IMG/VR virus record: IMGVR_UViG_3300032307_000369
Location: 124,001 to 188,000 of that record
Reading direction: 5' to 3' (one strand)
DNA: 64,000 nucleotides
Shown one piece after another: positions 1-16,379 of the stretch. The notes beneath the pieces were generated by a model, which made no database searches, was not told the origin of the DNA, and saw only the letters and a list, made by a program, of their open reading frames with translations. The first letter of the stretch is position 1. Each line of letters opens with the position of its first letter. The position numbers were made by a program, and so were the translations under genes.

Positions 1-2
1 AA

Positions 3-158
3 GGATGGACATGGCCCGTTGCTCCAATCCTAGCAATTTTAAAAATTGCTGATGTAAACAATACTAAGATGAGTTTTAGTAACGAAGTTGGTGCTGTTAT
101 GATTACTCTTGATAGTGGTATTGCAACTTACAAATATATTGTTCCAGCGCAAGCCTAA
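3..158 (+). CDS. C-terminal end of a gene truncated by the window edge; possibly sliding clamp (gp45-like)
   Basis: Frame 3 reads GWTWPVAPILAILKIADVNNTKMSFSNEVGAVMITLDSGIATYKYIVPAQA*. The ending resembles clamp C-termini. Confidence 0.45.
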   Translation, partial: GWTWPVAPILAILKIADVNNTKMSFSNEVGAVMITLDSGIATYKYIVPAQA

Positions 159-162
159 ATAA

Positions 163-522
163 ATGATTAAAAACATCACTCCTTCTGGTAGATATATACA
201 GGTAACTGGTGGCAACGCCAGTACCTATATAAATGGTTATCCTGGAGCACAAGGTGTTGGCAATATGCGTTTTAATACTTCTAATCAAAACATGGAAGTA
301 TTTGATGGCAGTAATTGGATTATGCTCAACATGGATTATGTTAGTGTAGGTTTAAATGGAGAAGCAGAATCATTGTTAGACTGGGCACGTAAAAAGCGTG
401 ATGAAGAGATGGAAATACAAGCTCTTGCCCAAACTAATCCTGCTGTTAAAAATGCATTAGAAGCTGTTGAACGAGCAAAAGAACAATTAAAAATAATAAA
501 GGAATTATCAATTGAGCACTAA
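163..522 (+). CDS. hypothetical protein
   Basis: 119-aa ORF preceded by CTAAATA; contains GNMRFNTSNQNMEVFDGSNW. Confidence 0.75.
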   Translation: MIKNITPSGRYIQVTGGNASTYINGYPGAQGVGNMRFNTSNQNMEVFDGSNWIMLNMDYVSVGLNGEAESLLDWARKKRDEEMEIQALAQTNPAVKNALEAVERAKEQLKIIKELSIEH

Positions 523-2041
523 TCGTATCAATTATACAGAAACACAAAGAGACTATGCTGTGTACTTGCCAGCTATTAGTAGCTTCTATACTAAAATGGT
601 TAGTGACACACGTCATAATCACAAAAGTGGTGTAGAGCCAGCAAGGATGCCTAAAGGGTTTGAGCATGGTATTGAATCTATGAACTTTTTAGATGCTGAA
701 CGTGGAGCATTTACATACAAATATGGATTGTATTCAGCAGGTCATGCGCAACTTGATTTAGATAAAACTATGCTTCGAGATGCTATGGTGCAAGAGCGTG
801 ACCGAGACAACACAATTATTTTAGGTGACTCAGGCGGTTTCCAAATTGGTAAAGGTGTATTAAAGTTTGATTGGCAAGATTTTAAAGGCAAAGGTGCTAA
901 TAAAACTCGTGATCAAATTTTAAATTGGTTAGAGCTTACTGCTAACTGGAGTATGGTACTCGACGTGCCCACATGGGCAAGTAATGATTTACATCGTGAA
1001 AAAACTGGTTTGAATAATTTTCAAGATTGCTTAGATGCAACTATTTGGAATAATAATTATTTCGCACAGAATCGTCTAGGTAATACAAAATTTTTAAACG
1101 TGTTACAAGGTAACAGTTTAGAAGAAGCTGACATTTGGTATGATGCTGTTAAACATTTGCCATTTGAAGGTTGGGCAATGGGCTCACAGAACATGTGTAA
1201 TATGCCAATTATTTTGCATAGACTAATAACAATGCGTGATGAAGGCATGCTAGAAGGCAAAGATTGGATACACTTCTTAGGTACTGCTCCATTAGACTGG
1301 GCTTGCTACTTAACAAGTATACAACGTCAATTGCGTAAGCATTGCAATCCTAACATCACTGTTAGTTTTGACTGTGCAAGTCCTTACATTGCAGTAGCAT
1401 ATGGTCTTTCATATACAGACCCAAGTTTCCGTAGAGATAAATGGTCAATTTTGATGGAAAAAGCTCCAGATAATAAAATTTGGGCAGGTGATACCATACC
1501 ATTCCCATGGCGCAGTGCTATTGGCAATCGTTTGACTATGGGAGATGTTTGTTATTATAAACCTGGCGACTTAAACAAAGTTGGCAAAGAAGGTAAAACT
1601 AGTTGGGATAGTTTTAGTTATGGCTTGTACATGGCACATAATACTGAAGTACACATCCAAGCTGTGCAACGTGCTAATCAACTGATGGATATGGAAGTGG
1701 CACGTTATAAACCAGATTGGAGATACTGGCGTAAACTTAACGAACGAGAAGAAAAAAGTGATAGCCCAAGTGAATGGGTTCCTCGAAATATTCTATACTT
1801 TGATCGTTTTGTTCAAGAATTATTTGAAAGCGACGATCCACGCACAATGTTAAAACATGCACACAATTTCTTAACCGAATTGCAAGGCGGATTACAGCGT
1901 GGCAAAACTGGCAACGATGTTAAAAATCGTGTTATTAATGCAGTGTTTGATTTTGGTGAAGACACAATCCCATCAAATGAAGAATTAACTGACATGAACG
2001 ATGAAAAAATTGTTGCTCTTGAATCTACTTTGGATGATTGA
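512..2041 (+). CDS. dpdA: TGT-family guanine transglycosylase, DpdA-like (inserts 7-deazaguanine into DNA)
   Basis: DSGGFQ catalytic motif, MVLDVP, NVLQG, IHFLG and SFDCAS motifs of the TGT barrel. Clustered with folE, queE and a queD-like gene. TTG start. Confidence 0.8.
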   Translation: MSTNRINYTETQRDYAVYLPAISSFYTKMVSDTRHNHKSGVEPARMPKGFEHGIESMNFLDAERGAFTYKYGLYSAGHAQLDLDKTMLRDAMVQERDRDNTIILGDSGGFQIGKGVLKFDWQDFKGKGANKTRDQILNWLELTANWSMVLDVPTWASNDLHREKTGLNNFQDCLDATIWNNNYFAQNRLGNTKFLNVLQGNSLEEADIWYDAVKHLPFEGWAMGSQNMCNMPIILHRLITMRDEGMLEGKDWIHFLGTAPLDWACYLTSIQRQLRKHCNPNITVSFDCASPYIAVAYGLSYTDPSFRRDKWSILMEKAPDNKIWAGDTIPFPWRSAIGNRLTMGDVCYYKPGDLNKVGKEGKTSWDSFSYGLYMAHNTEVHIQAVQRANQLMDMEVARYKPDWRYWRKLNEREEKSDSPSEWVPRNILYFDRFVQELFESDDPRTMLKHAHNFLTELQGGLQRGKTGNDVKNRVINAVFDFGEDTIPSNEELTDMNDEKIVALESTLDD

Positions 2042-2056
2042 TTTATCCAATTTCCA

Positions 2057-2085
2057 TTGACTTTATCAAAGGTATAGTTTATACT
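2057..2085 (+). promoter_or_regulatory. sigma70-type promoter
   Basis: TTGACT-N17-TATACT; ATG at 2092. Confidence 0.7.
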
Positions 2086-2091
2086 AGTTTT

Positions 2092-2604
2092 ATGCTTAAC
2101 ACACAAGAACGTCAAGAAGTAACATATTTTACTGGGTACGAAGTTGAACATACCATTTGTCATGGTATGAAAACTTTGTTTGTGGTAGGAACTCCGCCAC
2201 TTGAAGATATCCTGTACAAAGCAATTCAAACTGATTGCAAACATATCTATTTTGGTACTAGTCAGAGTTTTAATCCAAAAGCTATCAGTCATGAAGAATA
2301 CAAAGCATGGGATGATGTTATTGTGGGCTGTTTGAAAGCAGACTACTGGGTTACATTAGACTTTGGTGTTGAACACATTGAAGGTGTATTGGAATCCTGT
2401 TACAGTGAATATCCTCGCTTTGTTCCTATGATTAGTGTTAAGTTACCTTACATTAATCAACTCAACTACAATGCCACACTTAAATTGGATGATAGAACTT
2501 GGGGTGCTACTAATCCAGGTGTGTGGACACATCAACTACATGACCTAATGAGTAAAGACAAGTATACTTATTGGGATCAATACACTCAAGATACACCAAC
2601 ATGA
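2092..2604 (+). CDS. hypothetical protein of the deazaguanine cluster
   Basis: Open frame. Start moved to ATG 2092, downstream of the promoter. Stop overlaps the next start (ATGA). Confidence 0.7.
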   Translation: MLNTQERQEVTYFTGYEVEHTICHGMKTLFVVGTPPLEDILYKAIQTDCKHIYFGTSQSFNPKAISHEEYKAWDDVIVGCLKADYWVTLDFGVEHIEGVLESCYSEYPRFVPMISVKLPYINQLNYNATLKLDDRTWGATNPGVWTHQLHDLMSKDKYTYWDQYTQDTPT

Positions 2605-2990
2605 AAATTAAACATGACATCCGTCCTAATAAAATGATTTGGGTTACTTTTCGCAAAGAAGGTATTCACAAATATCCTGCCGCACTTACAGATCCATCAC
2701 TTGCAACAGGTGATGAATATGATGTAAGTTTCCTAGGCTATCCGCATCGTCACATCTTCCACTTTAAAGTATGGATTGGTGTTACACACGATGATCGCGA
2801 TATTGAATTTATCCAGTTTAAACGCTGGTTGGAAAAACTGTATGCAGAAGGTACACTCCAACTAGACTACAAGAGTTGCGAAATGATGTCAGGTGATTTA
2901 TATGACGTCATTAGCAAGAAGTATCCTAATCGTGAGATTTGGATTGAGGTCTCCGAAGATGGAGAAAATGGTTCTTTTATCAAGTATTAA
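2601..2990 (+). CDS. QueD/PTPS-like T-fold protein (DpdL-like)
   Basis: LGYPHRHIFHF (LxxxHRHxF) metal-binding motif, SCEMM and IEVSEDGENG; next to dpdA. Confidence 0.75.
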   Translation: MKIKHDIRPNKMIWVTFRKEGIHKYPAALTDPSLATGDEYDVSFLGYPHRHIFHFKVWIGVTHDDRDIEFIQFKRWLEKLYAEGTLQLDYKSCEMMSGDLYDVISKKYPNREIWIEVSEDGENGSFIKY

Positions 2991-3010
2991 CATTTTAAGG
3001 AAATTATAAA

Positions 3011-3250
3011 ATGGCGCAACCTGCATGGCTTAACAAATATCTAACTATGAAGCCTGAAGTAACTAAGATCTTTGATGATCTTGAAGCCTGGCACGATCAT
3101 TGCCGATTGGAGCTAATCAATTTTAACCCAGCAGACATGTATAAGTCTGATGTTTATCGCGACTGGAATCGTCGTAAAAATAGCAAACCACGTCATTTTA
3201 AAAATGACTTTAATCGTAACAACAATTATAAAAAGCCATATCGTCAATGA
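3011..3250 (+). CDS. hypothetical protein with basic C-terminus
   Basis: 79-aa ORF with AAGGA SD. Confidence 0.7.
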   Translation: MAQPAWLNKYLTMKPEVTKIFDDLEAWHDHCRLELINFNPADMYKSDVYRDWNRRKNSKPRHFKNDFNRNNNYKKPYRQ

Positions 3251-4332
3251 TATACATTGTTGATTTAGAAGCAGTTGAAACAAGGTACACGGGGCAATGG
3301 AAGCACCATGTACCTGAACTCTTACGAAAGGCAGGACACAATGTTCAAATTATATCTGGCCCTACGGATATCCCTTCTGCAACCACTCCTGGCGCTTTTC
3401 TTAATTTTGGTGGTACCAATATATACAAAGCTAGTCAAGTGGAGCAATTGGGCCGTTTATTTTGTAGCGGAGCCATTCATCCCGGTGATCACTTTATTTT
3501 TACTGATGCTTGGCATCCGGGCATTATAAACTTAAAGTACATGAGTGAGTTACTGGGTATTCCAGTAACAACACATGGCTTGTGGCATGCAGGTAGTTAT
3601 GATCCGCAAGACTTCTTAGGTCGTCTTGTCGGTGACAAGCCTTGGGTCAGACATGCTGAGAAAAGTTTTTTCCATTCGTTTGATCACAATTACTTTGCTA
3701 CAGACTTTCACATTGACTTGTTTATTAAAAATCTGTTTGAGATTAAACGTGAAGTATTTGTCAAACATCAAATTGATGAATATGTAGCAAGTGGAAAGAT
3801 AGTACGCTCAGGATGGCCCATGGAATATATGGACGGAACATTAACAATGTATAAGAATATGCCCAAGCGTGATCTTATCCTGTTCCCTCATCGAATTGCT
3901 CCAGAGAAGCAGGTTGAAATCTTTAGAGATCTAAAAGAACACTTGCCACAATATGAATTTGTAGTATGCCAAGATCAGCAATTAACAAAAAATGAATATC
4001 ATAATTTGTTAGGCGAAGCAAAGATGGTATTCAGTGCTAACCTACAAGAAACACTGGGTATTAGTTGTTACGAAGGCGCAGTAGTAGACGCTATTCCCAT
4101 GGTGCCTGATAGACTAAGCTATAGTGAAATGTACTATGACATTTTCAAATATCCAAGTATATGGACTGAAAGTTTTGAATCTTATCAAGCACATCGTCCA
4201 AATTTGTGTTTTGCAATTATGCAACACATGGATCATTATGAAACTAGATTGCCAAAACTAAAAAGTCAAACTATTGATTTAACTAACAACTTCTTCAGTG
4301 CAGGTAAATTAATTGAGCAACTCAAACAATAG
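3247..4332 (+). CDS. GT-B fold glycosyltransferase (GT4-like)
   Basis: FPHRIAPEKQ and SANLQETLGISCYEG (ExxGxxxxE) motifs. Confidence 0.8.
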   Translation: MIYIVDLEAVETRYTGQWKHHVPELLRKAGHNVQIISGPTDIPSATTPGAFLNFGGTNIYKASQVEQLGRLFCSGAIHPGDHFIFTDAWHPGIINLKYMSELLGIPVTTHGLWHAGSYDPQDFLGRLVGDKPWVRHAEKSFFHSFDHNYFATDFHIDLFIKNLFEIKREVFVKHQIDEYVASGKIVRSGWPMEYMDGTLTMYKNMPKRDLILFPHRIAPEKQVEIFRDLKEHLPQYEFVVCQDQQLTKNEYHNLLGEAKMVFSANLQETLGISCYEGAVVDAIPMVPDRLSYSEMYYDIFKYPSIWTESFESYQAHRPNLCFAIMQHMDHYETRLPKLKSQTIDLTNNFFSAGKLIEQLKQ

Positions 4333-4891
4333 AACGATTGTAGAAGAAAATGACGTATTTAAAAAATATAATTTTTCTTCTATAATATCTCCGCAAGATG
4401 AATCACTTGCAAAACAAGACATCAAAAATATAATTGAAAGTGGAAACTATTTTAAAAATAGTCCAAAGTTTCAAACCTCTGAAAATGTGTTTGCTAGAAC
4501 TGAACAACATTGGCTTAAACTTCGAATGAGTTTTATTTTTAGTTGTTTTATGTATTTGGGCAAAGAAGTTCAAATTAAAAATATGCAAGCATGGAGTTTC
4601 ATGACCAATAATGACATTGTTGAAGATCGTGATGATCTTTGGCACACCCATCATTTGACCAAAGAAAATAATTCTTTATCTGCAATTTATTATTTGCATA
4701 TACCAAATGATGCTGTATATATGCTAAGTGGTACTGAGTTTGCTCCTAACGGAGTTAAAGAGCAGGAACGTTTGGTAGTAACCCCCGCTAGTCAAAGTTG
4801 GCTAGTTTATCCCAGTGACCAATGGCACAGACCGATGCCACCTCAATCAAAAGAGTATCGGTTTATTGTTGCCGCAGATATGGAGTATTAA
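4313..4891 (+). CDS. putative 2OG-Fe(II) oxygenase
   Basis: WHTH...SAIYYLHIP...GTEF...YPSDQWH...RFIVAAD pattern of a DSBH oxygenase. Confidence 0.6.
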   Translation: MSNSNNRTIVEENDVFKKYNFSSIISPQDESLAKQDIKNIIESGNYFKNSPKFQTSENVFARTEQHWLKLRMSFIFSCFMYLGKEVQIKNMQAWSFMTNNDIVEDRDDLWHTHHLTKENNSLSAIYYLHIPNDAVYMLSGTEFAPNGVKEQERLVVTPASQSWLVYPSDQWHRPMPPQSKEYRFIVAADMEY

Positions 4892-4892
4892 T

Positions 4893-5207
4893 ATGAAATG
4901 GTTTGATAAATGGATTATGAAAAAAGCAGAGAACATTATGCGAAAGGACAGGGAAGTTGATAGTGGGCTTGTACCATATAACCTAGCTTCTACTAAACAA
5001 ATTAGACCTATAGAAGTTTCTGATTCATTGGACACTAGGGCTGTAAAATTCAAAATGTACAAAGCCAGTGGCGGTACCATTATTGAAACAGCTATGTACG
5101 ATGATAGAAAAGACAGACACAATATTAGTTTATATGTTATTACCAATGACAAGGATTTAGGCAGTGAAATTGGTAAAATCATAACTATGGAAAGTTTAAA
5201 AGTTTGA
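4893..5207 (+). CDS. hypothetical protein
   Basis: ATG 4893 directly follows the upstream stop, with GGAG SD. Confidence 0.7.
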   Translation: MKWFDKWIMKKAENIMRKDREVDSGLVPYNLASTKQIRPIEVSDSLDTRAVKFKMYKASGGTIIETAMYDDRKDRHNISLYVITNDKDLGSEIGKIITMESLKV

Positions 5208-5233
5208 CATATGATCCTAAATAATGTTATAAT
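5204..5233 (+). promoter_or_regulatory. sigma70 promoter with embedded late-type TAAATA box (folE)
   Basis: TTGACA-N18-TATAAT with extended TG; CCTAAATAAT lies in the spacer. Confidence 0.7.
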
Positions 5234-5259
5234 TAACTTGTTTAGTATAGGAATCAATA

Positions 5260-6009
5260 ATGACATCAAAAAATAATGAAACAGGCTTAGACGCAATGGC
5301 AGGCGATGGCGGATATAAAGAAGCATATCTAGCAGATGTAATTCGCTTTAAAATGAAACGTGATCAAAAACGTTTTTGGGCAGGTGACAATGTATCAGAT
5401 TATGTCACTGAAGAAATGAAACACAAGCTCATTGACGAAGCAACTGAAGCATTTGAACTAGTACTAGATCGATTGCTTATTGATCGAGAAAATGATCCTA
5501 ACTCGCATGGTACAGCCCGCCGACTGGCTAAAATGTACTTTAATGAAATAATGGCAGGAAGATATGAACCAGCACCAGATTGTACAGCATTTCCAAATGA
5601 CTCGGCGGACCGTTATGAGGGTATGTTGGTTGTTCGTAGTGAGCTTCGCAGTATGTGTAGCCATCATCACCAACCCGTTGCTGGCGTTGCTTATATTGGC
5701 ATTATTGCTGCCGAGAAACTCATTGGACTCAGCAAATACACACGCATCGCACAGTGGTGTGCAAGACGAGGTACTCTCCAGGAGGAACTTTGTAATGACA
5801 TTGCTAGGGAGATCCAAAAAGCAACAAACTCCCAAAACGTAGCAGTCTACATTCAAGCCACACATGGTTGCTGTGAGAATCGCGGCATTATGGCTCACAG
5901 TTCATTAACACAAACAACTGTACTAACTGGTACGTTTAAAACTGATCCAGGAGCGAAAAAAGAATTTTTTGATAACATTAAATTACAACAAGAGTTTGCT
6001 CCTAGATGA
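5260..6009 (+). CDS. folE: GTP cyclohydrolase I
   Basis: SMCSHH, IGLSKYTR, LQEE and HGCCENRG motifs. Confidence 0.95.
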   Translation: MTSKNNETGLDAMAGDGGYKEAYLADVIRFKMKRDQKRFWAGDNVSDYVTEEMKHKLIDEATEAFELVLDRLLIDRENDPNSHGTARRLAKMYFNEIMAGRYEPAPDCTAFPNDSADRYEGMLVVRSELRSMCSHHHQPVAGVAYIGIIAAEKLIGLSKYTRIAQWCARRGTLQEELCNDIAREIQKATNSQNVAVYIQATHGCCENRGIMAHSSLTQTTVLTGTFKTDPGAKKEFFDNIKLQQEFAPR

Positions 6010-6182
6010 ATTTAGACTTTGAAACACAAAACAAATACTATTTAGAATACAACATCAAAGCAGTAGAGTTAGGTGTAATGTGTAATCAGTATCCTGCGCT
6101 TCAAAAAGCGTGGGATCAATTTAAAACCGTTTACGAACTTTGTAAGGAAGAAAGCGATGAAGATTACCAGTCATTTCCTTAA
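6006..6182 (+). CDS. small hypothetical protein (58 aa, absent from ORF track)
   Basis: ATGA overlap with folE stop. Reads MNLDFETQNKYYLEYNIKAVELGVMCNQYPALQKAWDQFKTVYELCKEESDEDYQSFP. Confidence 0.65.
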   Translation: MNLDFETQNKYYLEYNIKAVELGVMCNQYPALQKAWDQFKTVYELCKEESDEDYQSFP

Positions 6183-6642
6183 TTGGTTAGATAAGAGAGG
6201 AAGAAAGCGTATTGTTATGGATCGTCAAAGTGATGACCCGTATTTAGAACGCTATTATTTGTTTTTAAAAGACAGAGATAATTTTCCTTTTAACGTATTC
6301 TTACACAAGTTTTTAAAAGGTGATCCTGACGATGTTCATGATCATCCATGGCCTTATGCTACACTGATACTCAAAGGTGGATACTACGAATGGATTCCAC
6401 AATTTAACTCAGATGGTACTAAAAGTTGTGAAGTACGCAAATGGCGTGGTCCTGGGCATTTCCGCATTTGTAGTCCAAACAGTTATCATCGCATCGAGCT
6501 AAAAGAAGGTGTAACAGCATGGACACTGTTTATGCCTGGACCTAAAAAACGTGATTGGGGATTTTTAGTTAATAACAAATGGATCCAACACGAACAATAC
6601 CTTAAGGAAAGATATGAGCAAGCGCATAATAACATACACTGA
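6157..6642 (+). CDS. cupin-fold protein
   Basis: HDHPW...LILKGGYYE...HRIEL...WTLF cupin motifs. Confidence 0.75.
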   Translation: MKITSHFLNWLDKRGRKRIVMDRQSDDPYLERYYLFLKDRDNFPFNVFLHKFLKGDPDDVHDHPWPYATLILKGGYYEWIPQFNSDGTKSCEVRKWRGPGHFRICSPNSYHRIELKEGVTAWTLFMPGPKKRDWGFLVNNKWIQHEQYLKERYEQAHNNIH

Positions 6643-7168
6643 ATTTAAAAATTTAGTTAGTAGTCTGTGCAGACAAATAACTCTTAGCGAGTGGAAACCA
6701 GACTACATTGTTGGCATTAGTAGAGGTGGCCTACTACCAGCAGTTATGATCAGTCATTATCTAAATGTTCCAATGCGACCATTGCAAGTAAGTTTACGAG
6801 ATGGTGGCGAATGCGTTAGCGATTTAGGTATGGCTGAAGATGCTTATGGGTATGTTAATATAGAAGACAGAGAATTCAATGATGGCGAATCTAGTAACGT
6901 ATTGTCTAGAAAAAACATACTAATAGTAGACGACATTAATGACCAGGGTAACACAGTCAATTGGATTTTAAATGATTGGCCTAGTGGTTGTATGCCTAAC
7001 GACAAGTCCTGGGAAACTGTTTGGAACAACAATGTAAAATTTGCAGTCTTATTTGATAACTTGGCAAGTAAAGCATCTATTAAAATGGACTTTGCAGGAG
7101 AAGAAATTAATAAATCTGTAAACGATGTATGGATTGAATTTCCTTACGAAGAATGGTGGACAAAATGA
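6614..7168 (+). CDS. purine phosphoribosyltransferase (Gpt/XGPRT-like)
   Basis: IVGISRGGLLPA, PRPP-binding ILIVDDINDQGNT, and WIEFPYE C-terminus. Confidence 0.85.
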   Translation: MSKRIITYTEFKNLVSSLCRQITLSEWKPDYIVGISRGGLLPAVMISHYLNVPMRPLQVSLRDGGECVSDLGMAEDAYGYVNIEDREFNDGESSNVLSRKNILIVDDINDQGNTVNWILNDWPSGCMPNDKSWETVWNNNVKFAVLFDNLASKASIKMDFAGEEINKSVNDVWIEFPYEEWWTK

Positions 7169-7563
7169 CCGACTTATATAAAGTAGTTCTAACTGAACCA
7201 GCATTTATAGAAGATTCAAAAAATGCACCGTGGGATAATTTGATTGAGGAAGACTTTCACGTTAAAGTATTTGCAGACAAATATCCAGTTACAGAAGGAC
7301 ACTTGTTGTTTATACCAAAGTATAATACTACACATGTTTTAGCAGACGCTATGAACGATGCTGTTCAACTAGGAATAAAAAAAGTACAGGCAGGTGAATG
7401 GGATGGATTTAATGTAGGGCTCAATATAGGGTTGGCTGCAGGACAAACTGTAGATTGGCCACACGTACATTTAATCCCAAGACGTAAGGGTGACATGGAA
7501 GATCCAACAGGCGGAGTACGTCACGTCATTCCAGAAAAAGGTAATTATAGGAAAACAAAATGA
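7165..7563 (+). CDS. HIT family nucleotide hydrolase
   Basis: DKYPVTEGHLLFIPK and AGQTVDWPHVHLIPR. Confidence 0.9.
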   Translation: MTDLYKVVLTEPAFIEDSKNAPWDNLIEEDFHVKVFADKYPVTEGHLLFIPKYNTTHVLADAMNDAVQLGIKKVQAGEWDGFNVGLNIGLAAGQTVDWPHVHLIPRRKGDMEDPTGGVRHVIPEKGNYRKTK

Positions 7564-7763
7564 AAAATCAAATCGTTGAAACACTAGAACAACACTTTGA
7601 AGCACACATTCGTAAGCACAAAATGAATGTAGATATTATGTTAGCAAACCCAATGGCTATTCATGATCACACCGATCTAATGGATGCTATTGAAAAAGAA
7701 GTTGCGCAAATTGCAGAGTACATGGATAAACTAGAAGTAATGGAAAAATACTTTAAGGATTAA
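7560..7763 (+). CDS. hypothetical protein
   Basis: 67-aa helical ORF, translationally coupled to the upstream gene. Confidence 0.7.
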   Translation: MKNQIVETLEQHFEAHIRKHKMNVDIMLANPMAIHDHTDLMDAIEKEVAQIAEYMDKLEVMEKYFKD

Positions 7764-7765
7764 TT

Positions 7766-7954
7766 ATGAAGTGTCAAACTTGTGGTAACGAATATAGTAC
7801 AACGTGTGATTATAGGCAAGGAAGATGTCCACATCATGCCTCAATGTCTTCGCAAATATTGGCTAGCCCTTATTACACAAGATACATAAACTTGTTTAAA
7901 TCTATCAAAAACTTTTTTACAAAAGGTGACTGCGATTGCGGTCATAAACACTGA
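7766..7954 (+). CDS. small Cys-rich hypothetical protein
   Basis: CxxC...C...CPHH; AAGGA SD. Confidence 0.6.
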   Translation: MKCQTCGNEYSTTCDYRQGRCPHHASMSSQILASPYYTRYINLFKSIKNFFTKGDCDCGHKH

Positions 7955-7955
7955 C

Positions 7956-8474
7956 ATGGCTCAATTATTTCGAATAACTCCTTTAGAAAAGAAAAACATT
8001 GAATTTTACGTTGATGTTTATGAAACATTACCTAATGGCGATATTAGAGGATTTATTGTTAGTGAGTGGTATCGTTGGGGTCAAGGTTTTCGTGAGCTAG
8101 ATGATCCTGTATTAGACTACGGTAACGGAGTAAATTCTATATATTGTAGCACTAATATTGGTTGGGGTTGTGAGCTTGACGATTTGTGTTCTGTATATGT
8201 TGAATTTCAAGGCGAGTTTACCGACGATGAAAAAGAAGAAATTGAAAAACGATGTCGTGGTGACTTAGAAGATGATGATGGACGTTGGGGTACTTCTTGG
8301 ATATTTGACGGTGATCATAATTGGCAAGTTGAAGATGACGGGGTTTTAATTTATGGTCCAGTAAAAATTGACCTTGTTGATGAAGATGCTTATAACGAAG
8401 TCATTAAAGAAGACATAGGTATGGAAAAATATCAACCTACTGCTTGGCCATTTAGTGACAAAAAAGATGAGTGA
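7956..8474 (+). CDS. acidic hypothetical protein
   Basis: Open frame; ATG 7956. Confidence 0.7.
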   Translation: MAQLFRITPLEKKNIEFYVDVYETLPNGDIRGFIVSEWYRWGQGFRELDDPVLDYGNGVNSIYCSTNIGWGCELDDLCSVYVEFQGEFTDDEKEEIEKRCRGDLEDDDGRWGTSWIFDGDHNWQVEDDGVLIYGPVKIDLVDEDAYNEVIKEDIGMEKYQPTAWPFSDKKDE

Positions 8475-8667
8475 TGCTACCGTAAAAATTGATTGGGACA
8501 ATCAAAATGGCTTTTGGTGGAATGAAACCTGTGCTATGGTATTAGAAGTGTTTGGGTTACCTGGAGATCGATATACAAGTCACCCTAAAGAAGATGCCAT
8601 GTTTTTCATTTTTAATAATGTAAAGGATGCAGACCTATGTCGGATATTACTAAGCGAGAGATTGTAA
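8467..8667 (+). CDS. hypothetical protein
   Basis: Short ORF within the operon. Confidence 0.6.
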   Translation: MSDATVKIDWDNQNGFWWNETCAMVLEVFGLPGDRYTSHPKEDAMFFIFNNVKDADLCRILLSERL

Positions 8668-8855
8668 AAATATCATTATTTGCCTTTATTGCTATTATTG
8701 CGATGTTTGCATCAATATATTACAGTATTCCAAAAAAAGGCGATGTAATCAAAATTGATTGTAGACTATCAGAAATAAGTCCAGATATTCCAATTTGGGC
8801 AAAACAAGAATGTCGTAAAAAACAGTTAGAATTGTTTGACAAACAACCTAAATAA
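8637..8855 (+). CDS. small membrane protein
   Basis: One hydrophobic segment (ISLFAFIAIIAMFASIYY) and a Cys pair. Confidence 0.6.
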   Translation: MSDITKREIVKISLFAFIAIIAMFASIYYSIPKKGDVIKIDCRLSEISPDIPIWAKQECRKKQLELFDKQPK

Positions 8856-8864
8856 TAGTATAAT
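8836..8864 (+). promoter_or_regulatory. consensus sigma70 promoter with embedded late-type TAAATA box (queE)
   Basis: TTGACA-N17-TATAAT; CCTAAATAAT lies in the spacer. Confidence 0.8.
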
Positions 8865-8886
8865 GAAGTATAAATTGGAATCACAT

Positions 8887-9792
8887 ATGGAAAAAATTAG
8901 ATACAGTGAAATGTTTTATAGCGTACAAGGCGAAGGTCGCTTTGTAGGAGTGCCCAGTGTTTTCTTTAGAACGTTTGGTTGCAACTTTGAATGTCGCGGT
9001 TTTGGACAAGAAAGAGGTAACTTTATACCTATTGAACAAATGCCACACAACAATGATCCTAGAGCCAATCCTGATCATCCAGAAGCATATAAGAGTTTTG
9101 AAGAACTGCCAGTTAGTAATATTGGGTGCGATACTAGTGCCAGCTGGAGTGCAAAATATAAACACTTGGCTACTTGGGATACCGTAGATGTTATTGCTGA
9201 CAAGCTAACTGCAATGACTCCAGAAGGAAAATGGACATGTGATAACGGTCAGGATGTACATCTTGTTATTACTGGCGGTGAGCCTTTAATGTGGCAAAAG
9301 CAATTGGCGGCTTTATTAAAACAACCGCAATTTAAAGACATTAAAAATGTAACATTTGAAACAAATACAACACATGAACTAAAACAAGAATTTATCCAAA
9401 TGATGCTGGATCTTGGTTTTGGTCCTACTCGAGATCCAAATTACTTTGTTAAGTTTACTTGGAGTTGCAGTCCTAAATTGACTAGTTCTGGAGAGGCATG
9501 GGACGAAGCAATTAAGCCAGAAGTAGCGGCTCAATACTATGGATTACCTGGTAGGAACTTTTATTTTAAATTTGTTGTAACTGATGAACAAGATGTTTTA
9601 GAAGTTGAAAAGGCCATTGAACTGTATAAAGAAAAAGAAATTTTTTGTGATGTTTATTTGATGCCTTGTGGTGCTACGCAAGAAGGACAAGCTAAAACTG
9701 CACGTCAAGTTGCAGAACTATGTTTACAAAAAGGTTTTAGATTTAGTCCAAGATTGCACGTAGACTTGTTTGGTAATGCATGGGGGACTTAA
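8887..9792 (+). CDS. queE: 7-carboxy-7-deazaguanine synthase (radical SAM)
   Basis: FYSVQGEG, RTFGCNFEC...GCDT, VITGGEP, ETN, SPK and RFSPRLH motifs. Confidence 0.9.
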   Translation: MEKIRYSEMFYSVQGEGRFVGVPSVFFRTFGCNFECRGFGQERGNFIPIEQMPHNNDPRANPDHPEAYKSFEELPVSNIGCDTSASWSAKYKHLATWDTVDVIADKLTAMTPEGKWTCDNGQDVHLVITGGEPLMWQKQLAALLKQPQFKDIKNVTFETNTTHELKQEFIQMMLDLGFGPTRDPNYFVKFTWSCSPKLTSSGEAWDEAIKPEVAAQYYGLPGRNFYFKFVVTDEQDVLEVEKAIELYKEKEIFCDVYLMPCGATQEGQAKTARQVAELCLQKGFRFSPRLHVDLFGNAWGT

Positions 9793-9793
9793 T

Positions 9794-10243
9794 ATGGTAA
9801 CTAGAAAAACAACAGTAAAAAAGGAAGAGCCAGTTAAAAAAACTGTGCCTAGAAAAAGAACAGCGGCGGCTGAAGATAAAGATATTGCTAAATCTTACAA
9901 AGAAAAGCCTGCGGCAAAACCAAGAGCTAAAAAAGAAACTAAGCAATATACTTCCAAAGCAGAAGCTACTAAAAGAAAAGAACCTTGGGTAGCTGTATTA
10001 GAAACACACGTTAATCCTGATAATCCATCTAACGGATTTTTTGAGCTTGACTGGAACGAGTACTTTATAGTACAATTAAAGGGTCATGGTTATGATGGCC
10101 CAACTGAGGAAAGTATTGTTGATGTTTGGTTCCAAAATTTGTGTAGGAACATTGGCAGTGAAGAAGGTGTGAACATGGAACGTCGGGGAAGTGGTTACAT
10201 CAATATAAACAATTTAGGCAACGGCAAATCGGAAGTAAGTTAA
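9794..10243 (+). CDS. hypothetical protein with Lys-rich N-terminus
   Basis: Open frame; GFFELDWNEYF core. Confidence 0.75.
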   Translation: MVTRKTTVKKEEPVKKTVPRKRTAAAEDKDIAKSYKEKPAAKPRAKKETKQYTSKAEATKRKEPWVAVLETHVNPDNPSNGFFELDWNEYFIVQLKGHGYDGPTEESIVDVWFQNLCRNIGSEEGVNMERRGSGYININNLGNGKSEVS

Positions 10244-11227
10244 ATGTCATATATACTCGTAGATACTGCAAACACGTTTTTTCGTGCAAGGCATGCAATT
10301 AAAGGTGATCTTGAAACTAAGATTGGAATGAGTCTTCATGTTACTTTTAATAGCGTTAGAAAGGCATGGAACGACTTTAACGGCAGTCATGTTATCTTCT
10401 GCCTCGAGGGTCGCTCGTGGCGTAAAGATCACTACGGTCCATACAAACGAAATAGGTCTGATGCTAGAGCCGCACATAACGAAAAAGAAGCAGAAGAAGA
10501 AAGAGTCTTTTGGGAGACCTTTGATCAGTTTAAACAATTTGTTACTGAAAAAACAAACTGTACAGTTTTGCAAAATTCTCAACTAGAAGCTGATGATTTA
10601 ATTGCAGGCTTTATTCAAGCACATCCAAATGATAATCATGTTATCATTTCAACAGATGGCGATTTTGCACAATTAATTGCCCCTAATGTAAAACAGTATA
10701 ATGGTGTGAGTGAAGTAACAACTACACACGAAGGCTATTTTGATTCAAAAGGCAAAAGAGTAAAAGATAAAAAAACTGGGGAAGAAAAACCTGCTCCTAA
10801 TCCAGAATGGTTGTTGTTTGAAAAATGTATGCGTGGCGATACAAGTGATAATATCTTTTCAGCATATCCTGGTGTGCGAACTAAAGGAACAAAAAGCAAA
10901 GTAGGACTTATTGAAGCATTTGAAGATCGTACTACTAAAGGGTATGCTTGGAACAATCTGATGCTCCAAAAGTGGGTGGATCATGAAGGCGTAGAACACA
11001 GGGTATTAGACGATTATCAACGTAATAGACTACTTTGTGATTTGTCTGCACAACCTGAAGCTATTAGACAAATAATTGATGAAACAATTAAAACTAATGC
11101 TGTTTCAAAAGAAGTAGGTCAAGTAGGAGTAAAAATGTTAAAATTTTGTGCTAGTTATGAACTTACCAAAATTAGTGAAAACATTCAAACTTATGCTGAC
11201 GCTTTTAATGCTAGATACCAAAAATAA
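10244..11227 (+). CDS. rnh: RNase H / 5'-3' flap exonuclease (T4 rnh-like)
   Basis: ILVD, SWRK..Y..YK.NR, EADD, ISTDGDFAQL and GDTSDNI motifs. Confidence 0.9.
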   Translation: MSYILVDTANTFFRARHAIKGDLETKIGMSLHVTFNSVRKAWNDFNGSHVIFCLEGRSWRKDHYGPYKRNRSDARAAHNEKEAEEERVFWETFDQFKQFVTEKTNCTVLQNSQLEADDLIAGFIQAHPNDNHVIISTDGDFAQLIAPNVKQYNGVSEVTTTHEGYFDSKGKRVKDKKTGEEKPAPNPEWLLFEKCMRGDTSDNIFSAYPGVRTKGTKSKVGLIEAFEDRTTKGYAWNNLMLQKWVDHEGVEHRVLDDYQRNRLLCDLSAQPEAIRQIIDETIKTNAVSKEVGQVGVKMLKFCASYELTKISENIQTYADAFNARYQK

Positions 11228-11241
11228 AAGAAAGGGATTAT

Positions 11242-11715
11242 ATGACATTACCATGTGCTAAACCTTTAATTCCAAATAAAGAATGGATAGTAGAAACTAA
11301 TGGAGTAAAATTAGGAACTTTGAGCAAAGAAAAATCAGGCTATGTATTTTTTGCTAATGGTACTAAAATTGAATTCCATGACTTAAAAGAAGTTGAAGCG
11401 GCAATGGACTTAATTATTGAAACTCCATACTCTGTTAAGGCAAGCAAAACAAAAGATGTTTATGGTTATGAAACTAAAACATTTCCGCATAACCCTTTGT
11501 ATGATGTACAACGCAAACTTCCAATTTATACAAAGAGTGCAAAAAGCATTAGTAAGCACTGTGCCGGACATTACTTGATTAAGTTTCCAAAGGGATGGGT
11601 TAAAAGTCATTGCCCTAAATTAATCACTTTGGAAAGATATCCTTATCGTGGTCCTTTTCATACAGATGCAGAAGTAAGACTTGAACTTTCAAAGGCACAT
11701 CGTGAACGAAATTAA
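11242..11715 (+). CDS. hypothetical protein
   Basis: 157-aa ORF with SD. Confidence 0.75.
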   Translation: MTLPCAKPLIPNKEWIVETNGVKLGTLSKEKSGYVFFANGTKIEFHDLKEVEAAMDLIIETPYSVKASKTKDVYGYETKTFPHNPLYDVQRKLPIYTKSAKSISKHCAGHYLIKFPKGWVKSHCPKLITLERYPYRGPFHTDAEVRLELSKAHRERN

Positions 11716-11923
11716 TAATTATATAATTGAAGATTTTGCTAATAAGGTATTTGCCGCTAAAAAGACAAATCAAAAACAAATTGTTCTAGATATTAAAGAA
11801 GCGCAGATATTAGTAGAAAATCTTACATTGGTACTAGCAAGAGCAGTTGGTAACCTCGATAAAGCAGTCAAAACAAGCGATGACGGGGTAATTTCAGTGT
11901 CTATGGATGGTGGTACTTTTTAA
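11702..11923 (+). CDS. hypothetical protein
   Basis: Open frame; probable GTG start at 11702. Confidence 0.6.
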   Translation: MNEINNYIIEDFANKVFAAKKTNQKQIVLDIKEAQILVENLTLVLARAVGNLDKAVKTSDDGVISVSMDGGTF

Positions 11924-11962
11924 TAAATAAACTACGTATATAAACGAGGATACGTAGTTTAT
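11923..11962 (+). promoter_or_regulatory. late promoter plus start-sequestering hairpin
   Basis: ATAAATA at 11923. A 13-bp perfect stem (11927-11939/11950-11962) covers the start codon, with GAGG in the loop. Confidence 0.7.
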
Positions 11963-12254
11963 GAGTAGACCAAAGCCAAAAATACTGTTGGAAAGTACTA
12001 ACAAAAAGAACTATAAAACTGAGCAAGTTTTAGAGAGTGATGCCATTTGGGCAGTTTTTTATAAGGGTCAACCAGTCAACTTAAAAACCACTAGTTTGGT
12101 TAGTAGTTATCCTGGACCTAAATATAAAAAAGTAAGTTTTAGTAATCCTGGTCATGCACACAATCTTTCTAACAAATTGAATAAGATGTTTGAATGCAAA
12201 GATTTTTGTGTGTATAAATTAACAACTGGTGAACCAGTTAATGAACAAGACTAA
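11961..12254 (+). CDS. hypothetical protein
   Basis: 97-aa ORF with GAGGA SD. Confidence 0.8.
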   Translation: MSRPKPKILLESTNKKNYKTEQVLESDAIWAVFYKGQPVNLKTTSLVSSYPGPKYKKVSFSNPGHAHNLSNKLNKMFECKDFCVYKLTTGEPVNEQD

Positions 12255-12633
12255 CATTACCAAAGCATTAATTTCAAACGACGAAAAATATAGTAGTGAC
12301 CCAAAAAGTTTTAACATGCTATACAGGGCATGGTGGGTAAACTGGCGTTCTGCTGAAGATAGAAGATTTCGTTTATCAGACAGTGGTTACAAATACTTTA
12401 ATACCAACGCTGAAATAAAATTTTACCAAATTAGATTTCCAATTGGGTTAGTGATTACTAACAAAATGATTATTGATTTGGATAGATTTATTGATTGCCC
12501 ATACTATCTAACCAACGAAGAAATTTTGGTAACCCATGAAAAAACTGCACTACAATTGGTGCTGTTTGATGGTGATCTTACCAAATTTGGAAGAGCAAAA
12601 CGAGCAACACGACAAAGAAACTTGCAGAAGTAG
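12241..12633 (+). CDS. hypothetical protein
   Basis: Open frame overlapping the upstream stop. Confidence 0.7.
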   Translation: MNKTNITKALISNDEKYSSDPKSFNMLYRAWWVNWRSAEDRRFRLSDSGYKYFNTNAEIKFYQIRFPIGLVITNKMIIDLDRFIDCPYYLTNEEILVTHEKTALQLVLFDGDLTKFGRAKRATRQRNLQK

Positions 12634-12662
12634 TTGACTTTTTGTCCTAATGGCATTACAAT
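12634..12662 (+). promoter_or_regulatory. sigma70 promoter
   Basis: TTGACT-N17-TACAAT. Confidence 0.7.
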
Positions 12663-12706
12663 ATAAAGACAGTAAACATTTAATTCTGTTTTTAGAAAGG
12701 TAACAA

Positions 12707-13792: not shown

Positions 13793-13806
13793 GTGCAAAA
13801 AATAAC

Positions 13807-13835
13807 AAAGAAGGGGCTTAAATGCCCTTTCTTTT
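13807..13835 (+). terminator. intrinsic terminator
   Basis: AAAGAAGGGGC-TTAAAT-GCCCTTTCTTTT. Confidence 0.7.
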
Positions 13836-13836
13836 A

Positions 13837-13865
13837 TAGACTTTTAACAAGATTCGTGCTATAAT
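13837..13865 (+). promoter_or_regulatory. sigma70 promoter
   Basis: TAGACT-N17-TATAAT with extended TG. Confidence 0.7.
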
Positions 13866-13894
13866 ATGCTATATAATTGAAAGAAAGGTTGTAT

Positions 13895-15169: not shown

Positions 15170-15184
15170 ACTGCGTAGATTATT

Positions 15185-15475
15185 ATGCCACTGAAAAATG
15201 GTACACTGAATCCTTTAAATGTTTTGGACTATCGAGTAGTACATCGTATTCCAAAACACTTTGAAAGCGTCTATGTTGATGTAGATTGTGATAAACCTAC
15301 ATTGACAAGATGGATTTATACAAACCTAAATAGTAGGTTTTGTGTGCAATCAGAGCTTAATATATCTAATGGAAATTTTATGACAGAGTCAACTAAAATT
15401 GGATTTGAAGATCCAAGAGAATTGACAATGTTCATGCTTACATGCCCATATTTAGAAAATAGGAGAAATAAATGA
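15185..15475 (+). CDS. hypothetical protein
   Basis: 96-aa ORF after the late promoter. Confidence 0.7.
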   Translation: MPLKNGTLNPLNVLDYRVVHRIPKHFESVYVDVDCDKPTLTRWIYTNLNSRFCVQSELNISNGNFMTESTKIGFEDPRELTMFMLTCPYLENRRNK

Positions 15476-15732
15476 GTGAGCAAACTGAAGTACAAGCAAC
15501 AGAAACTGTAGCAACAGCCGCTGAGGCAACACCTGCACAAGCACCAGCACCTGACCTAACTGTCAATGATCTACAAGCATTACGCACAATTATTGACGTT
15601 GCAAGTCAACGCGGTACATTTAAAGCAGGTGAATTAGCTAGTGTTGGCCAAGTGTATAATCGTTTAGAAGCATTTCTAAATCACATTGCACCAGCTAAAA
15701 CTGAAGGTGCCGCAGAAGCACCAAAACAATAA
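15472..15732 (+). CDS. hypothetical protein
   Basis: AGGAG SD; Ala/Pro-rich ends. Confidence 0.8.
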   Translation: MSEQTEVQATETVATAAEATPAQAPAPDLTVNDLQALRTIIDVASQRGTFKAGELASVGQVYNRLEAFLNHIAPAKTEGAAEAPKQ

Positions 15733-15741
15733 GGAAAAAAA

Positions 15742-16326: not shown

Positions 16327-16379
16327 AGGGGGCAGTTATTTCTAGTACTTTTCCTAGGAGAGTTAGGATAGTATCTGGC

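Follow-up and report, generated by a model that had tools for sequence, protein, structure and literature searches.

A predicted DpdL-type 7-deazaguanine DNA modification cluster linked to a glycosyltransferase gene in a freshwater jumbo phage

Organization of the cluster

The analyzed window is a 64,000-nucleotide stretch (positions 124,001 to 188,000) of IMG/VR record IMGVR_UViG_3300032307_000369, which derives from a freshwater jumbo phage distantly related to Pseudomonas phage PA5oct. Positions 512 to 9792 contain a set of co-oriented, + strand genes lying between the DNA polymerase and RNase H genes, and all of the genes named at this locus in an earlier note made from the sequence alone are present there, confirming its observation. 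The first (512 to 2041, +) codes for a 509-aa DpdA-like putative DNA transglycosylase without sequence matches in Pfam, PHROG, NCBIfam, or PDB, but a Foldseek search with its AF2 model (pLDDT 75.6) returned only tRNA-guanine transglycosylases (TGTs; top 50 hits, E about 1e-6, probability 1.00). Its GDSGGFQ (D106) and SFDCASP (D287) motifs are invariant in 33 homologues; it is 40% identical to PA5oct EST35_0316 and has more than 7,800 metagenomic homologues with no Pfam domain. It is followed by p188 (2038 to 2604, +), a conserved protein of unknown function without a family match and with only a weak Atlas lead (0.75), homologues of which lie directly upstream of the ACP17 DpdA and elsewhere in the PA5oct genome.

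The T-fold protein (2571 to 2990, +), described in the note as QueD/DpdL-like, is DpdL and not QueD, as L55-GYP-H59-R-H61-I-F63 matches the published DpdL signature LxxxHRHxF (PMC10516641); it is 57% and 32% identical to the ACP17 and phiST DpdL proteins, respectively, and its Atlas structural neighbors include PTPS clusters. DpdL is a QueD paralogue in which Cys is changed to Leu and is the predicted 7-carboxy-7-deazaguanine (CDG) decarboxylase, although this activity is itself unproven. A small, conserved basic protein of unknown function (p79; 3011 to 3250, +; pI 9.6), with tblastn hits in most related loci, separates DpdL from a GT-B/GT4 glycosyltransferase (GT; 3247 to 4332, +). The AF2 model of the GT (pLDDT 95.4) has Foldseek hits to the GT4 enzymes BshA, MshA, PglA, and glycogen synthase (E 4e-9); the protein contains R216/K221 and EX7E (E268-x7-E276) motifs, and 24 of 40 homologues match PF00534.

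Downstream are a 2OG-Fe(II) oxygenase-like protein (4313 to 4891, +) supported only by a weak match to PF13759 (3e-4, below the gathering score), and a small conserved protein of unknown function (p130; 4893 to 5207, +; likely start at M27), which has no family match but has tblastn hits in many related loci. These are followed by FolE (GTP cyclohydrolase I; 5260 to 6009, +; PF01227, 2.3e-39; phrog_2197, 7e-45), a cupin (6157 to 6642, +; phrog_4786, a 'cysteine dioxygenase' family, 7e-39), a 6-oxopurine-type phosphoribosyltransferase (PRTase; 6614 to 7168, +; PF00156, 8e-12) whose PDB relatives are purine/HGPRT enzymes, and a HIT-family nucleotide hydrolase/transferase (7153 to 7563, +; PF01230, 5e-10) with Hint, Fhit, and Ap4A phosphorylase as PDB relatives. 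A very acidic protein, p182 (7926 to 8474, +; pI 4.1), is found only in the closest relatives and is probably unrelated to the pathway; either p188 or p182 could be the unknown 170-aa protein listed in the note. The last gene (8836 to 9792, +) codes for a QueE-like radical-SAM CDG synthase (phrog_2076, 4.5e-58) that is 37 to 41% identical to phage QueE proteins of nt-1, KVP40, and BUCT-ZZ01 and has an unusual C49-x3-C53-x44-C98 cluster motif.

The note had reported no QueC, QueF, or GAT-QueC in the window and proposed a wider search for queC and queD; none of the first three was found among the 40 window ORFs scanned with Pfam or in the 10 kb upstream on the source contig, the large structural ORFs at 18 to 51 kb not being included in the scan. 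No canonical QueD was found in these regions either, and the FolE-QueD-QueE series invoked in the note is therefore incomplete in the window.

Linkage of accessory genes to DpdL and DpdA

Co-occurrence with dpdA in related phages, which the note had put forward as the measure of whether the accessory genes belong to the pathway, gives different answers for different genes. A GT of this family follows DpdL in all 32 related IMG/VR loci with at least 8 kb of downstream sequence, and p188 is also present in all 32. In 26 of these the GT was identified by tblastn; of the other six, the two tested (L080 and L056) carry divergent members by hhalign (probability 99.3 to 99.6), and the remaining four (L077, L079, L081, and L082) resemble L080 in gene content and are inferred to do so. 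Among 50,697 isolate phage records, all 17 full-length GT hits are in DpdL phages, and of 5 partial hits, in 227-kb Xanthomonas/Erwinia phages, at least 3 appear among the listed QueD hits. HMM hits next to DpdL occur in PA5oct, Phosso, ACP17, BUDD (BUDD/X1), BCSR5, and BUCT-ZZ01, and in metagenomic contigs L169 and L170, such that the GT adjoins DpdL/DpdA in at least eight contexts besides this one. One distant GT family member (L171) lies in a context with no deazaguanine genes within 7 kb.

The presence of the GT tracks with the type of DpdA. The three long DpdA types all come with a GT, whereas phages with the short DpdA3 (phiST, D479, Ahp1, and RHph_I1_18), which include the one lineage proven to make plain dDG, have no GT in the 12- to 15-kb flanks of DpdL searched or by tblastn of the records, although divergent GTs outside these flanks could have been missed. 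DpdL itself does not separate the two groups, as the DpdL of GT-less RHph_I1_18 is as close to that of the window (59%) as is the DpdL of GT-carrying ACP17 (57%).

The PRTase family is also restricted to DpdL phages among isolates, with all six phage tblastn hits in such phages, and homologues are present in the PA5oct, L080, BUCT-ZZ01, and L170 clusters; it is, however, absent near the cluster in several relatives (L037, L049, L051, L056, L059, and L061) and is thus dispensable or supplied elsewhere. Because phiST, which makes plain dDG, is among the phages with this PRTase, the gene does not point to extra decoration, and guanine salvage or base activation is more likely. The links of the GT and the PRTase to DpdL appear to be new.

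The other three candidate tailoring genes are not linked to the pathway. The 2OG oxygenase gene is a strain-specific insertion, found only in relatives at least 96% identical (2 of 32 long loci, L012 and L013) and with one remote hit in the 50,697 phage records; metagenome depth is flat over 4312 to 5311, and one contig joins 4113 to 5522 without it. The cupin is a generic accessory gene whose family is present in 96 phage records, mostly of mycobacteriophages but also of Burkholderia phages, Xylella phages, and others, with no known DpdL phage among the 40 listed. The HIT protein, for which a link to the pathway is not shown, resembles generic HIT proteins of unrelated actinophages. The full version of the note's reading, in which the 2OG oxygenase, cupin, HIT, PRTase, and GT would all act in series to build a complex hypermodified deazaguanine, with hydroxylation first and then glycosylation, is very unlikely; the genes are co-oriented and tightly packed, with cupin, PRTase, and HIT overlapping by 16 to 29 nt, and hydroxylation would create an acceptor for O-glycosylation, but the 2OG gene is absent from 30 of 32 relatives that keep the GT and from co-occurring strains, and the cupin, PRTase, and HIT genes vary independently among relatives.

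Predicted pathway and product

The note's interpretation, a QueC-independent route to a further decorated deazaguanine, is supported only in part. The region is a QueC-less 7-deazaguanine DNA modification cluster to which the GT is truly linked, but the route itself is that described in 2023 for Cellulophaga phage phiST, the product of which is dDG (PMC10516641); the note listed dDG among known products without recognizing the cluster as this pathway. We propose that GTP is converted by FolE and then by a QueD that is not encoded here but is either elsewhere in the genome, as in PA5oct, or supplied by the host, that QueE completes CDG, and that DpdL removes the carboxyl group to give 7-deazaguanine (DG), which the long TGT-fold DpdA exchanges for guanine in phage DNA. 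The dedicated GT4 enzyme would then use an NDP-sugar to add a sugar to the deazaguanine, either on the free base prior to insertion (slightly favored) or on DNA afterwards, such that the final base would be a glycosylated 7-deazaguanine, as yet unidentified, rather than plain dDG. The PRTase, which resembles HGPRT/XGPRT, most likely returns excised guanine to GMP and then GTP, feeding FolE in a closed loop. The folds, motifs, and gene linkage are shown by these analyses, but every chemical step, the sugar acceptor, and the order of steps are inferred; the overall scheme is about as likely as not, and the glycosylated product is plausible but somewhat short of even odds.

Several lines of evidence suggest that a sugar is involved. 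The R216/K221 and EX7E donor-binding motifs are retained, in L080 the GT is followed by an NDP-sugar epimerase/dehydratase (PF01370, 3e-50), and BUCT-ZZ01 has a second GT beside DpdA. PA5oct DNA resists cleavage at G-containing restriction sites and its base is chemically unidentified (PMC12191111), and Cui et al. could not make dDG with ACP17 DpdL plus DpdA alone and suspected missing enzymes (PMC10516641); the ACP17 GT lies between those two genes. However, no chemistry is available for any GT-carrying phage, and DG has no obvious hydroxyl acceptor, such that a sugar would need N-, C-, or carboxyl-linked chemistry, which is unusual for a GT4. The GTs are also acidic (pI 5.4 to 6.2), unlike typical DNA-binding transferases, although DpdA is acidic too.

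A possible but less likely alternative is that the DNA carries plain dDG and that the GT either is a non-catalytic or scaffolding partner needed by long-type DpdAs or glycosylates another target, such as a protein, another base, or a host structure. This is consistent with the lack of an obvious acceptor, the acidity of the GTs, the equal similarity of DpdL in phages with and without the GT, and with phiST, which makes 100% dDG with FolE, QueD, QueE, DpdL, and DpdA3 and no GT. Strict conservation of the donor-binding residues argues for catalysis, though, and an NDP-sugar epimerase/dehydratase gene sits next to the GT in L080; adjacency to DpdL in at least nine contexts and the confinement of full-length homologues to deazaguanine phages form a pattern that is hard to explain by an unrelated target.

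It is unlikely that modification proceeds primarily at the nucleotide level, with the PRTase converting DG (or CDG) and PRPP into a 7-deazaguanine ribonucleotide, as ToyH and TubE do in toyocamycin and tubercidin biosynthesis, kinases and ribonucleotide reductase giving 7-deaza-dGTP for incorporation by the phage polymerase, DpdA playing a secondary repair or top-up role, and the GT acting later. The PRTase family is confined to DpdL phages, including phiST, where replacement is 100%, the cluster lies between DNA polymerase and RNase H, phiST and D479 have MazG-like or dNMP-kinase genes beside DpdL/DpdA3, and L080 adds a GMP-reductase/IMPDH-like gene, as in toyocamycin clusters. However, a DpdA accompanies every such cluster, Cui et al. 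argue for post-replicative insertion (PMC10516641), the PRTase is missing near the cluster in the relatives noted above, and guanine salvage explains the same linkage more simply. Least likely is that the cluster does not modify DNA but makes a pterin glycoside or a soluble or tRNA-directed deazapurine; FolE, a PTPS-like T-fold protein, and a GT4 are the ingredients of pteridine glycoside synthesis, as in cyanobacteria, but a QueE and a TGT-fold DpdA are always present, the cluster sits among replication genes, PA5oct restriction data already suggest modified G, and phiST, which carries DpdL, has dDG in its DNA.

Relationships to known systems

The DpdL/DpdA3 pathway of phiST (PMC10516641) similarly has FolE, QueE, DpdL, and a TGT-superfamily DNA transglycosylase, and lacks QueC, and the same PRTase family is encoded in phiST. 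It differs in that the 509-aa DpdA described here is unrelated at the jackhmmer level to the 259-aa DpdA3, a dedicated GT4 and p188 are added here, QueD is not in the present cluster, and the product of the present cluster is unknown. The DpdA-GT-DpdL-PRTase-QueE cluster of Pseudomonas jumbo phage PA5oct (Wroclawvirus) has the same gene families in nearly the same order (DpdA 40%, GT 40%, DpdL 56%, and RNase H 49% identity), although most of these genes are annotated as hypothetical and the modification is unidentified; in PA5oct, FolE and QueD lie 51 kb away, p188 is elsewhere, and there is no cupin, HIT, or 2OG gene in the cluster.

The ToyH/TubE deazapurine PRTases of toyocamycin and tubercidin biosynthesis are likewise HGPRT-like and encoded together with FolE, a QueD-like protein, and QueE, although homology to them was not tested and the phage enzyme may simply salvage guanine. 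Glycosylated 7-deazaguanines occur outside DNA as mannosyl- and galactosyl-queuosine in tRNA, for which QTMAN is a GT4-type enzyme, and as the N2-glycosylated deazaguanine antibiotics huimycin and dapiramicin, showing that GT-B enzymes can glycosylate 7-deazaguanine derivatives. A QTMAN cluster is among the structural neighbors of the phage GT (TM 0.74), but this similarity is no higher than to other GT4 enzymes (TM 0.71 to 0.80), and the acceptors there are a cyclopentenediol hydroxyl or the N2 amine of preQ0, in products that are not in DNA. T4-type glucosylation of 5-hydroxymethylcytosine by alpha/beta-GT provides an analogy rather than a homology, as the GT family differs (GT4-like here), the base would be a purine and not a pyrimidine, and the acceptor group and timing are unknown, but in it too a phage GT-B enzyme decorates a non-canonical DNA base with a sugar from an NDP-sugar as a second layer of counter-defense.

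Genomic context of the deazaguanine cluster

Positions 1-18,000 form a plus-strand block of replication and nucleotide-metabolism genes of a large phage, within a source contig (IMGVR_UViG_3300032307_000369; 245,550 bp; 100% identity) that recurs in freshwater, lake, and subsurface metagenomes. A DNA-level search of the region against isolate phages gave no match, and the nearest cultured relatives are the PA5oct-like Pseudomonas jumbo phages, with amino acid identities of 40% for DpdA, 40% for the glycosyltransferase (GT), 56% for DpdL, and 49% for RNase H, and nearly the same gene order. The cluster lies between a family-B DNA polymerase, just upstream on the contig, and a 5'-3' exonuclease/RNase H. 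Downstream, a MoxR-like AAA ATPase (AAA_5/AAA_3) is followed by a DUF2201 metallopeptidase/VWA-like protein (12707-15169), a conserved pair that also lies downstream of the cluster in two related loci (L008 and L011). Dihydrofolate reductase and a canonical thymidylate synthase (9e-105) are side by side at 16666-18038, so there is no sign of thymine replacement, and a SegE-like GIY-YIG homing endonuclease is encoded at 56302-56748. A single minus-strand open reading frame of 4,747 codons (27720-41963) is located among baseplate and tail-like genes and is followed by a 1,136-codon ORF (41967-45377); it was not analyzed but presumably codes for a giant structural or fiber protein.

Identification of the cluster genes

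The genes that an earlier note had listed in this region are present. FolE (5260-6009), a phosphoribosyltransferase (PRTase; 6614-7168), and a HIT protein (7153-7563) pass Pfam thresholds, the cupin (6157-6642) belongs to phrog_4786, the "cysteine dioxygenase" family, and the 2OG oxygenase (4313-4891) is only a subthreshold match. The PRTase matches PF00156 at 45 bits, above the 26.3-bit cutoff, and NF006613 XGPRT at 1.8e-8, below its cutoff; its PDB relatives (1vdm, 2xbu, and 4trb) place it closest to HGPRT/XGPRT enzymes, although its substrate was not assayed. The QueE-like protein (8836-9792) matches phrog_2076 at 4.5e-58 over residues 15-317 and is 37 to 41% identical to QueE of nt-1, KVP40, and BUCT-ZZ01, but the NCBIfam QueE models match only its N terminus and below their cutoffs. 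Its three cluster cysteines are spaced C49-x3-C53-x44-C98 rather than as the usual CxxxCxxC or the Cx14CxxC variant, with a 44-residue insert inside the radical-SAM motif. A 182-aa protein (7926-8474) with a pI of 4.1 (43 Asp+Glu) has no family hit and is found only in the closest relatives; its composition recalls DNA-mimic antirestriction proteins.

The 509-aa DpdA-like protein (512-2041) has no sequence-level hit in Pfam, PHROGs, NCBIfam, or PDB, either as a single sequence or as a profile, and thus does not match the TGT family model (PF01702); only the fold search identified it. Its AF2 model (pLDDT 75.6) matches only tRNA-guanine transglycosylases, the top 50 Foldseek PDB hits all being Z. 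mobilis TGT (E 1e-6 to 2e-5, probability 1.00, TM 0.44-0.52 on the target), consistent with a TGT-type (beta/alpha)8 barrel. The motifs GD106SGGFQ and SFD287CASP are invariant in 33 homologues, and their aspartates are equivalent to the catalytic TGT D102/D280. The protein does not fall in the described DpdA3 subfamily of phiST: jackhmmer from phiST DpdA3 reaches D479, Ahp1, and RHph_I1_18 but none of the 509-aa family, and hhalign gives a probability of only 20%; DpdA1, DpdA2, DpdA4, and bDpdA were not compared. More generally, hhalign of the 509-aa family against single DpdA sequences of ACP17, BUDD, and phiST was not significant (probability 0.4 to 20%), although the motifs align with ACP17. 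The family gave more than 7,800 metagenomic hits, with no Pfam domain and no informative source name. It is encoded with DpdL, FolE, and QueE in the window and in 32/32 long related loci, but exchange of guanine in DNA for a deazaguanine base was not assayed. The adjacent conserved protein p188 gave only a weak lead to TIM-barrel fragments in an Atlas search (0.75).

The 139-aa protein at 2571-2990 is DpdL. It carries L55-G-Y-P-H59-R-H61-I-F63, the exact LxxxHRHxF signature used to separate DpdL from QueD (CxxxHGH) (PMC10516641), and tblastn shows 57% identity to ACP17 DpdL (1e-36) and 32% to phiST DpdL (1e-6). The evidence on a T-fold or PTPS-like structure does not decide the matter: the best PDB hit of the profile is PH0634 (2dj6) at an E value of only 0.31 and hhalign against QueD is not significant, whereas Atlas structural neighbors include PTPS clusters at TM 0.84; no structure was predicted for the protein itself. 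The context is that of DpdL, with FolE, QueE, and DpdA present and QueC not found, although decarboxylation of CDG to 7-deazaguanine (DG) was not measured here and is unproven for the founding members too.

The 361-aa protein at 3247-4332 is a GT-B/GT4 enzyme with two Rossmann-like domains in its AF2 model (pLDDT 95.4, pTM 0.92), and Foldseek hits BshA, MshA, PglA, and glycogen synthases (E 4e-9 to 1e-6, TM up to 0.67). The donor-binding motifs of this class, an R/K pair and EX7E, are present as H215-R216-IAPE-K221 and E268-x7-E276; E276 is invariant and R216, K221, and E268 are at least 90% conserved in 40 diverse homologues, down to 28% identity. Matches to Glycos_transf_1 (PF00534) are mixed and do not settle membership at the curated threshold: the window protein has no hit, 24/40 homologues hit weakly (best, 2.3e-6), and the family member in L080, an IMG/VR relative with 54% DpdA identity, scores 33 bits, above the 26.4-bit cutoff. 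Donor and acceptor are not known, and sugar transfer was not assayed.

No QueC, QueF, or Gat-QueC was found among the 40 window ORFs scanned or in the 10 kb upstream. A wider search for queC and queD had been suggested beforehand as a check, and for canonical QueD it came out negative as far as it was taken: tblastn of three phage QueDs against the window found nothing, the 10 kb upstream has none, and a scan of IMG/VR with the PA5oct-type QueD family did not hit the source contig. In PA5oct, FolE and a CxxxHGH QueD lie 51 kb from the DpdA cluster, so a distant QueD is plausible but not shown, and the analysis does not distinguish it from use of the host enzyme. In the PA5oct record, FolE and QueD (EST35_0253 and EST35_0254; positions 1-1206 of the PA5oct segment examined, L092) carry the note "ESI-MS/MS," the same flag given to proteins annotated as structural, so they may be packaged in the virion. 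PA5oct also has a second QueD-like gene with CxxxHGY (EST35_0258), a variant motif shared by the "QueD" of ACP17, phiST, and RHph_I1_18.

Linkage of accessory genes to the pathway

Whether the accessory genes accompany dpdA in related phages had been named in advance as the test of their involvement, and this was examined in 80 IMG/VR loci of the same DpdA family, of which the 32 with at least 8 kb downstream were counted, and by searching each accessory protein against 50,697 isolate phage records. DpdL is core, being present in 32/32 loci and in 28 isolate records in about 12 lineages. p188 is also present in 32/32 loci, and among isolates in PA5oct-likes and ACP17; it is linked, although its function is unknown. 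The PRTase is common but variable in the related loci, but all six of its tblastn hits in isolate records (BUCT-ZZ01 and five phiST-like phages, including dDG phage phiST; KC821604.1 50373-50705) are DpdL phages, and jackhmmer adds PA5oct EST35_0321, L080, and the metagenomic contig L170; the paper that defined DpdL does not mention this link. The cupin is common but variable and generic, with 96 isolate records, mostly mycobacteriophages, plus Burkholderia, Xylella, and other phages, and no known DpdL phage among the 40 of these records that were examined. HIT is variable and also generic, its isolate homologues being in unrelated actinophages. The 2OG oxygenase is strain specific, with presence in 2/32 loci, both at least 96% identical, and one remote isolate hit. 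Metagenome contig depth stays at the single-strain level (about 20) over 4312-5311, while DpdL, the GT, and FolE attract many relatives, and one contig joins 4113 to 5522 without the oxygenase. The 2OG oxygenase, cupin, and HIT genes were rejected as pathway members on this evidence.

The GT was detected by tblastn in 26 of the 32 loci. The first impression that the other six lack it was wrong for the two tested, L080 and L056, each of which carries a divergent member of the same family at the same position (hhalign probability 99.6 and 99.3, respectively); L077, L079, L081, and L082 resemble L080 in gene content, so their GT is inferred, not shown. In isolate records, 17/17 full-length hits are DpdL phages, and the five partial hits are in 227-kb Xanthomonas/Erwinia phages, at least three of which also appear among the QueD hits. 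The GT is thus core in this lineage. A family HMM finds further members directly beside DpdL in BUCT-ZZ01 and BCSR5, and two divergent metagenomic members also sit in DpdL clusters, L169 with DpdL-GT and L170 with QueD-PRTase-DpdL-x-QueE-GT-x-FolE on a small PolA phage contig, although one distant member (L171) has no such context within 7 kb.

Over 512-6500, contig depth across DpdL, the GT, and FolE in three metagenomic runs is 3 to 70 times the strain's baseline, so many related phages with these conserved genes coexist in the same freshwater and subsurface samples. The GT is more conserved (about 80% identity among the top 120 hits) than DpdA (about 58%). The runs were available as contigs, and read-level signals of base modification were not examined; the RNA libraries contain only short pieces of relatives, which is no proof of transcription. 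The system is very common, the DpdA and GT families each giving at least about 8,000 metagenomic hits, and is also present in cultured phages of Pseudomonas, Acidovorax, Xanthomonas, Burkholderia, Sinorhizobium, and Synechococcus.

GT presence tracks the DpdA type

Four kinds of DpdA-like proteins next to DpdL are separated by jackhmmer. A GT is present with the 509- to 540-aa type (window, PA5oct, and Phosso), the 416- to 437-aa type (ACP17, BUDD, and BUCT-ZZ01), and a 446-aa type with DSGGFQ and CxCxxC (BCSR5), but was not found with DpdA3 (phiST, D479, Ahp1, and RHph_I1_18), either by HMM in the 12- to 15-kb flanks of DpdL or by tblastn of the whole records, and it is on these searches that the absence rests. 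DpdA3 is also the only type for which plain dDG has been proven. DpdL itself does not split this way, as that of RHph_I1_18 is 59% identical to the window's DpdL and that of ACP17 is 57% identical; the step that differs therefore lies after DG formation and involves the GT together with the transglycosylase.

Several lines of evidence suggest that a sugar is really transferred. In addition to the conserved donor-binding residues, the divergent GT in L080 (14061-20354 of IMGVR_UViG_3300018428_005148) is followed by an NAD-dependent NDP-sugar epimerase/dehydratase (3e-50), and then by FolE, a 357-aa IMPDH/GMP-reductase-family protein, the PRTase, a Vut_1/YhhQ-type transporter (the family of preQ0/preQ1 importers), and a cupin_2. 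The PRTase plus GMP-reductase-like pair recalls toyocamycin/tubercidin clusters, and this subclade may make a different sugar or even a different deazapurine. The T4-like Synechococcus phage BUCT-ZZ01 (L168, 9388-13545) has FolE, a second GT (447 aa) next to its DpdA (416 aa), DpdL, and the GT (388 aa), with QueE, an annotated XGPRT, and QueD just upstream; two GTs in one deazaguanine cluster hint at a disaccharide.

Proposed pathway

In the most likely mechanism, of which all chemical steps are inferred rather than shown, FolE, a QueD from elsewhere, and QueE would make CDG, DpdL would make DG, the GT4 would attach a sugar, and the long DpdA would put the base into DNA in exchange for guanine. 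The order of GT and DpdA is open, but covariation of DpdA type with the GT and the acidic pI of all the GTs (5.4 to 6.2) lean slightly toward glycosylation of the free base before insertion. That this is a DpdL-type deazaguanine DNA-modification module is held with high confidence, but that the final base carries a sugar is a tentative proposal, somewhat less likely than not. No chemistry exists for any GT-carrying phage, and DG offers no obvious O-acceptor. The PRTase also occurs in plain-dDG phiST, so it is not a tailoring enzyme; its simplest role is to recycle the guanine released by base exchange into GMP and GTP for FolE, the alternative being activation of DG or CDG to a nucleotide, as in toyocamycin and tubercidin biosynthesis.

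The furthest-reaching possibility, also somewhat less likely than not, is that phages of this type, including the therapeutic candidate PA5oct and thousands of uncultured freshwater jumbo phages, replace guanine with a glycosylated 7-deazaguanine, which to our knowledge would be the first sugar-decorated purine in a natural genome. The system would consist of DpdL, a dedicated GT4, and a long DpdA that has coevolved to handle the bulkier base, with a PRTase closing a loop from excised guanine back to deazaguanine.

Relationship to known systems

The earlier note's interpretation is partly supported, in that this is a deazaguanine cluster with a linked GT, but the QueC-independent route that it inferred is not new. 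That route is the DpdL pathway of phiST, which encodes FolE, QueD, QueE, DpdL, and DpdA3 and in which all dG is replaced by 2'-deoxy-7-deazaguanine (PMC10516641). What differs from that pathway is the linked GT4 and the long DpdA; that paper mentions neither a glycosyltransferase nor a phosphoribosyltransferase, and literature searches, in which subscription journals are poorly covered, found no report of either tied to deazaguanine DNA modification, nor of a glycosylated deazaguanine in phage DNA. Two published observations are unexplained. Expression of ACP17 or phiST DpdL with its DpdA gave no dDG, and the authors suspected missing enzymes (PMC10516641), and the G modification of PA5oct is unidentified. 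The gene set defined here, DpdL, a GT4, a long DpdA, and a PRTase, gives a concrete explanation for the failed reconstitution from ACP17 DpdL plus DpdA and for the PA5oct modification.

Deazaguanine DNA modifications are a main way for phages to escape restriction, and hosts have answered with glycosylases and END nucleases that recognize them. A sugar on deazaguanine would be a new base for DNA chemistry and enzymology and the purine counterpart of the glucosyl-hmC of T4, a second layer in the same arms race.
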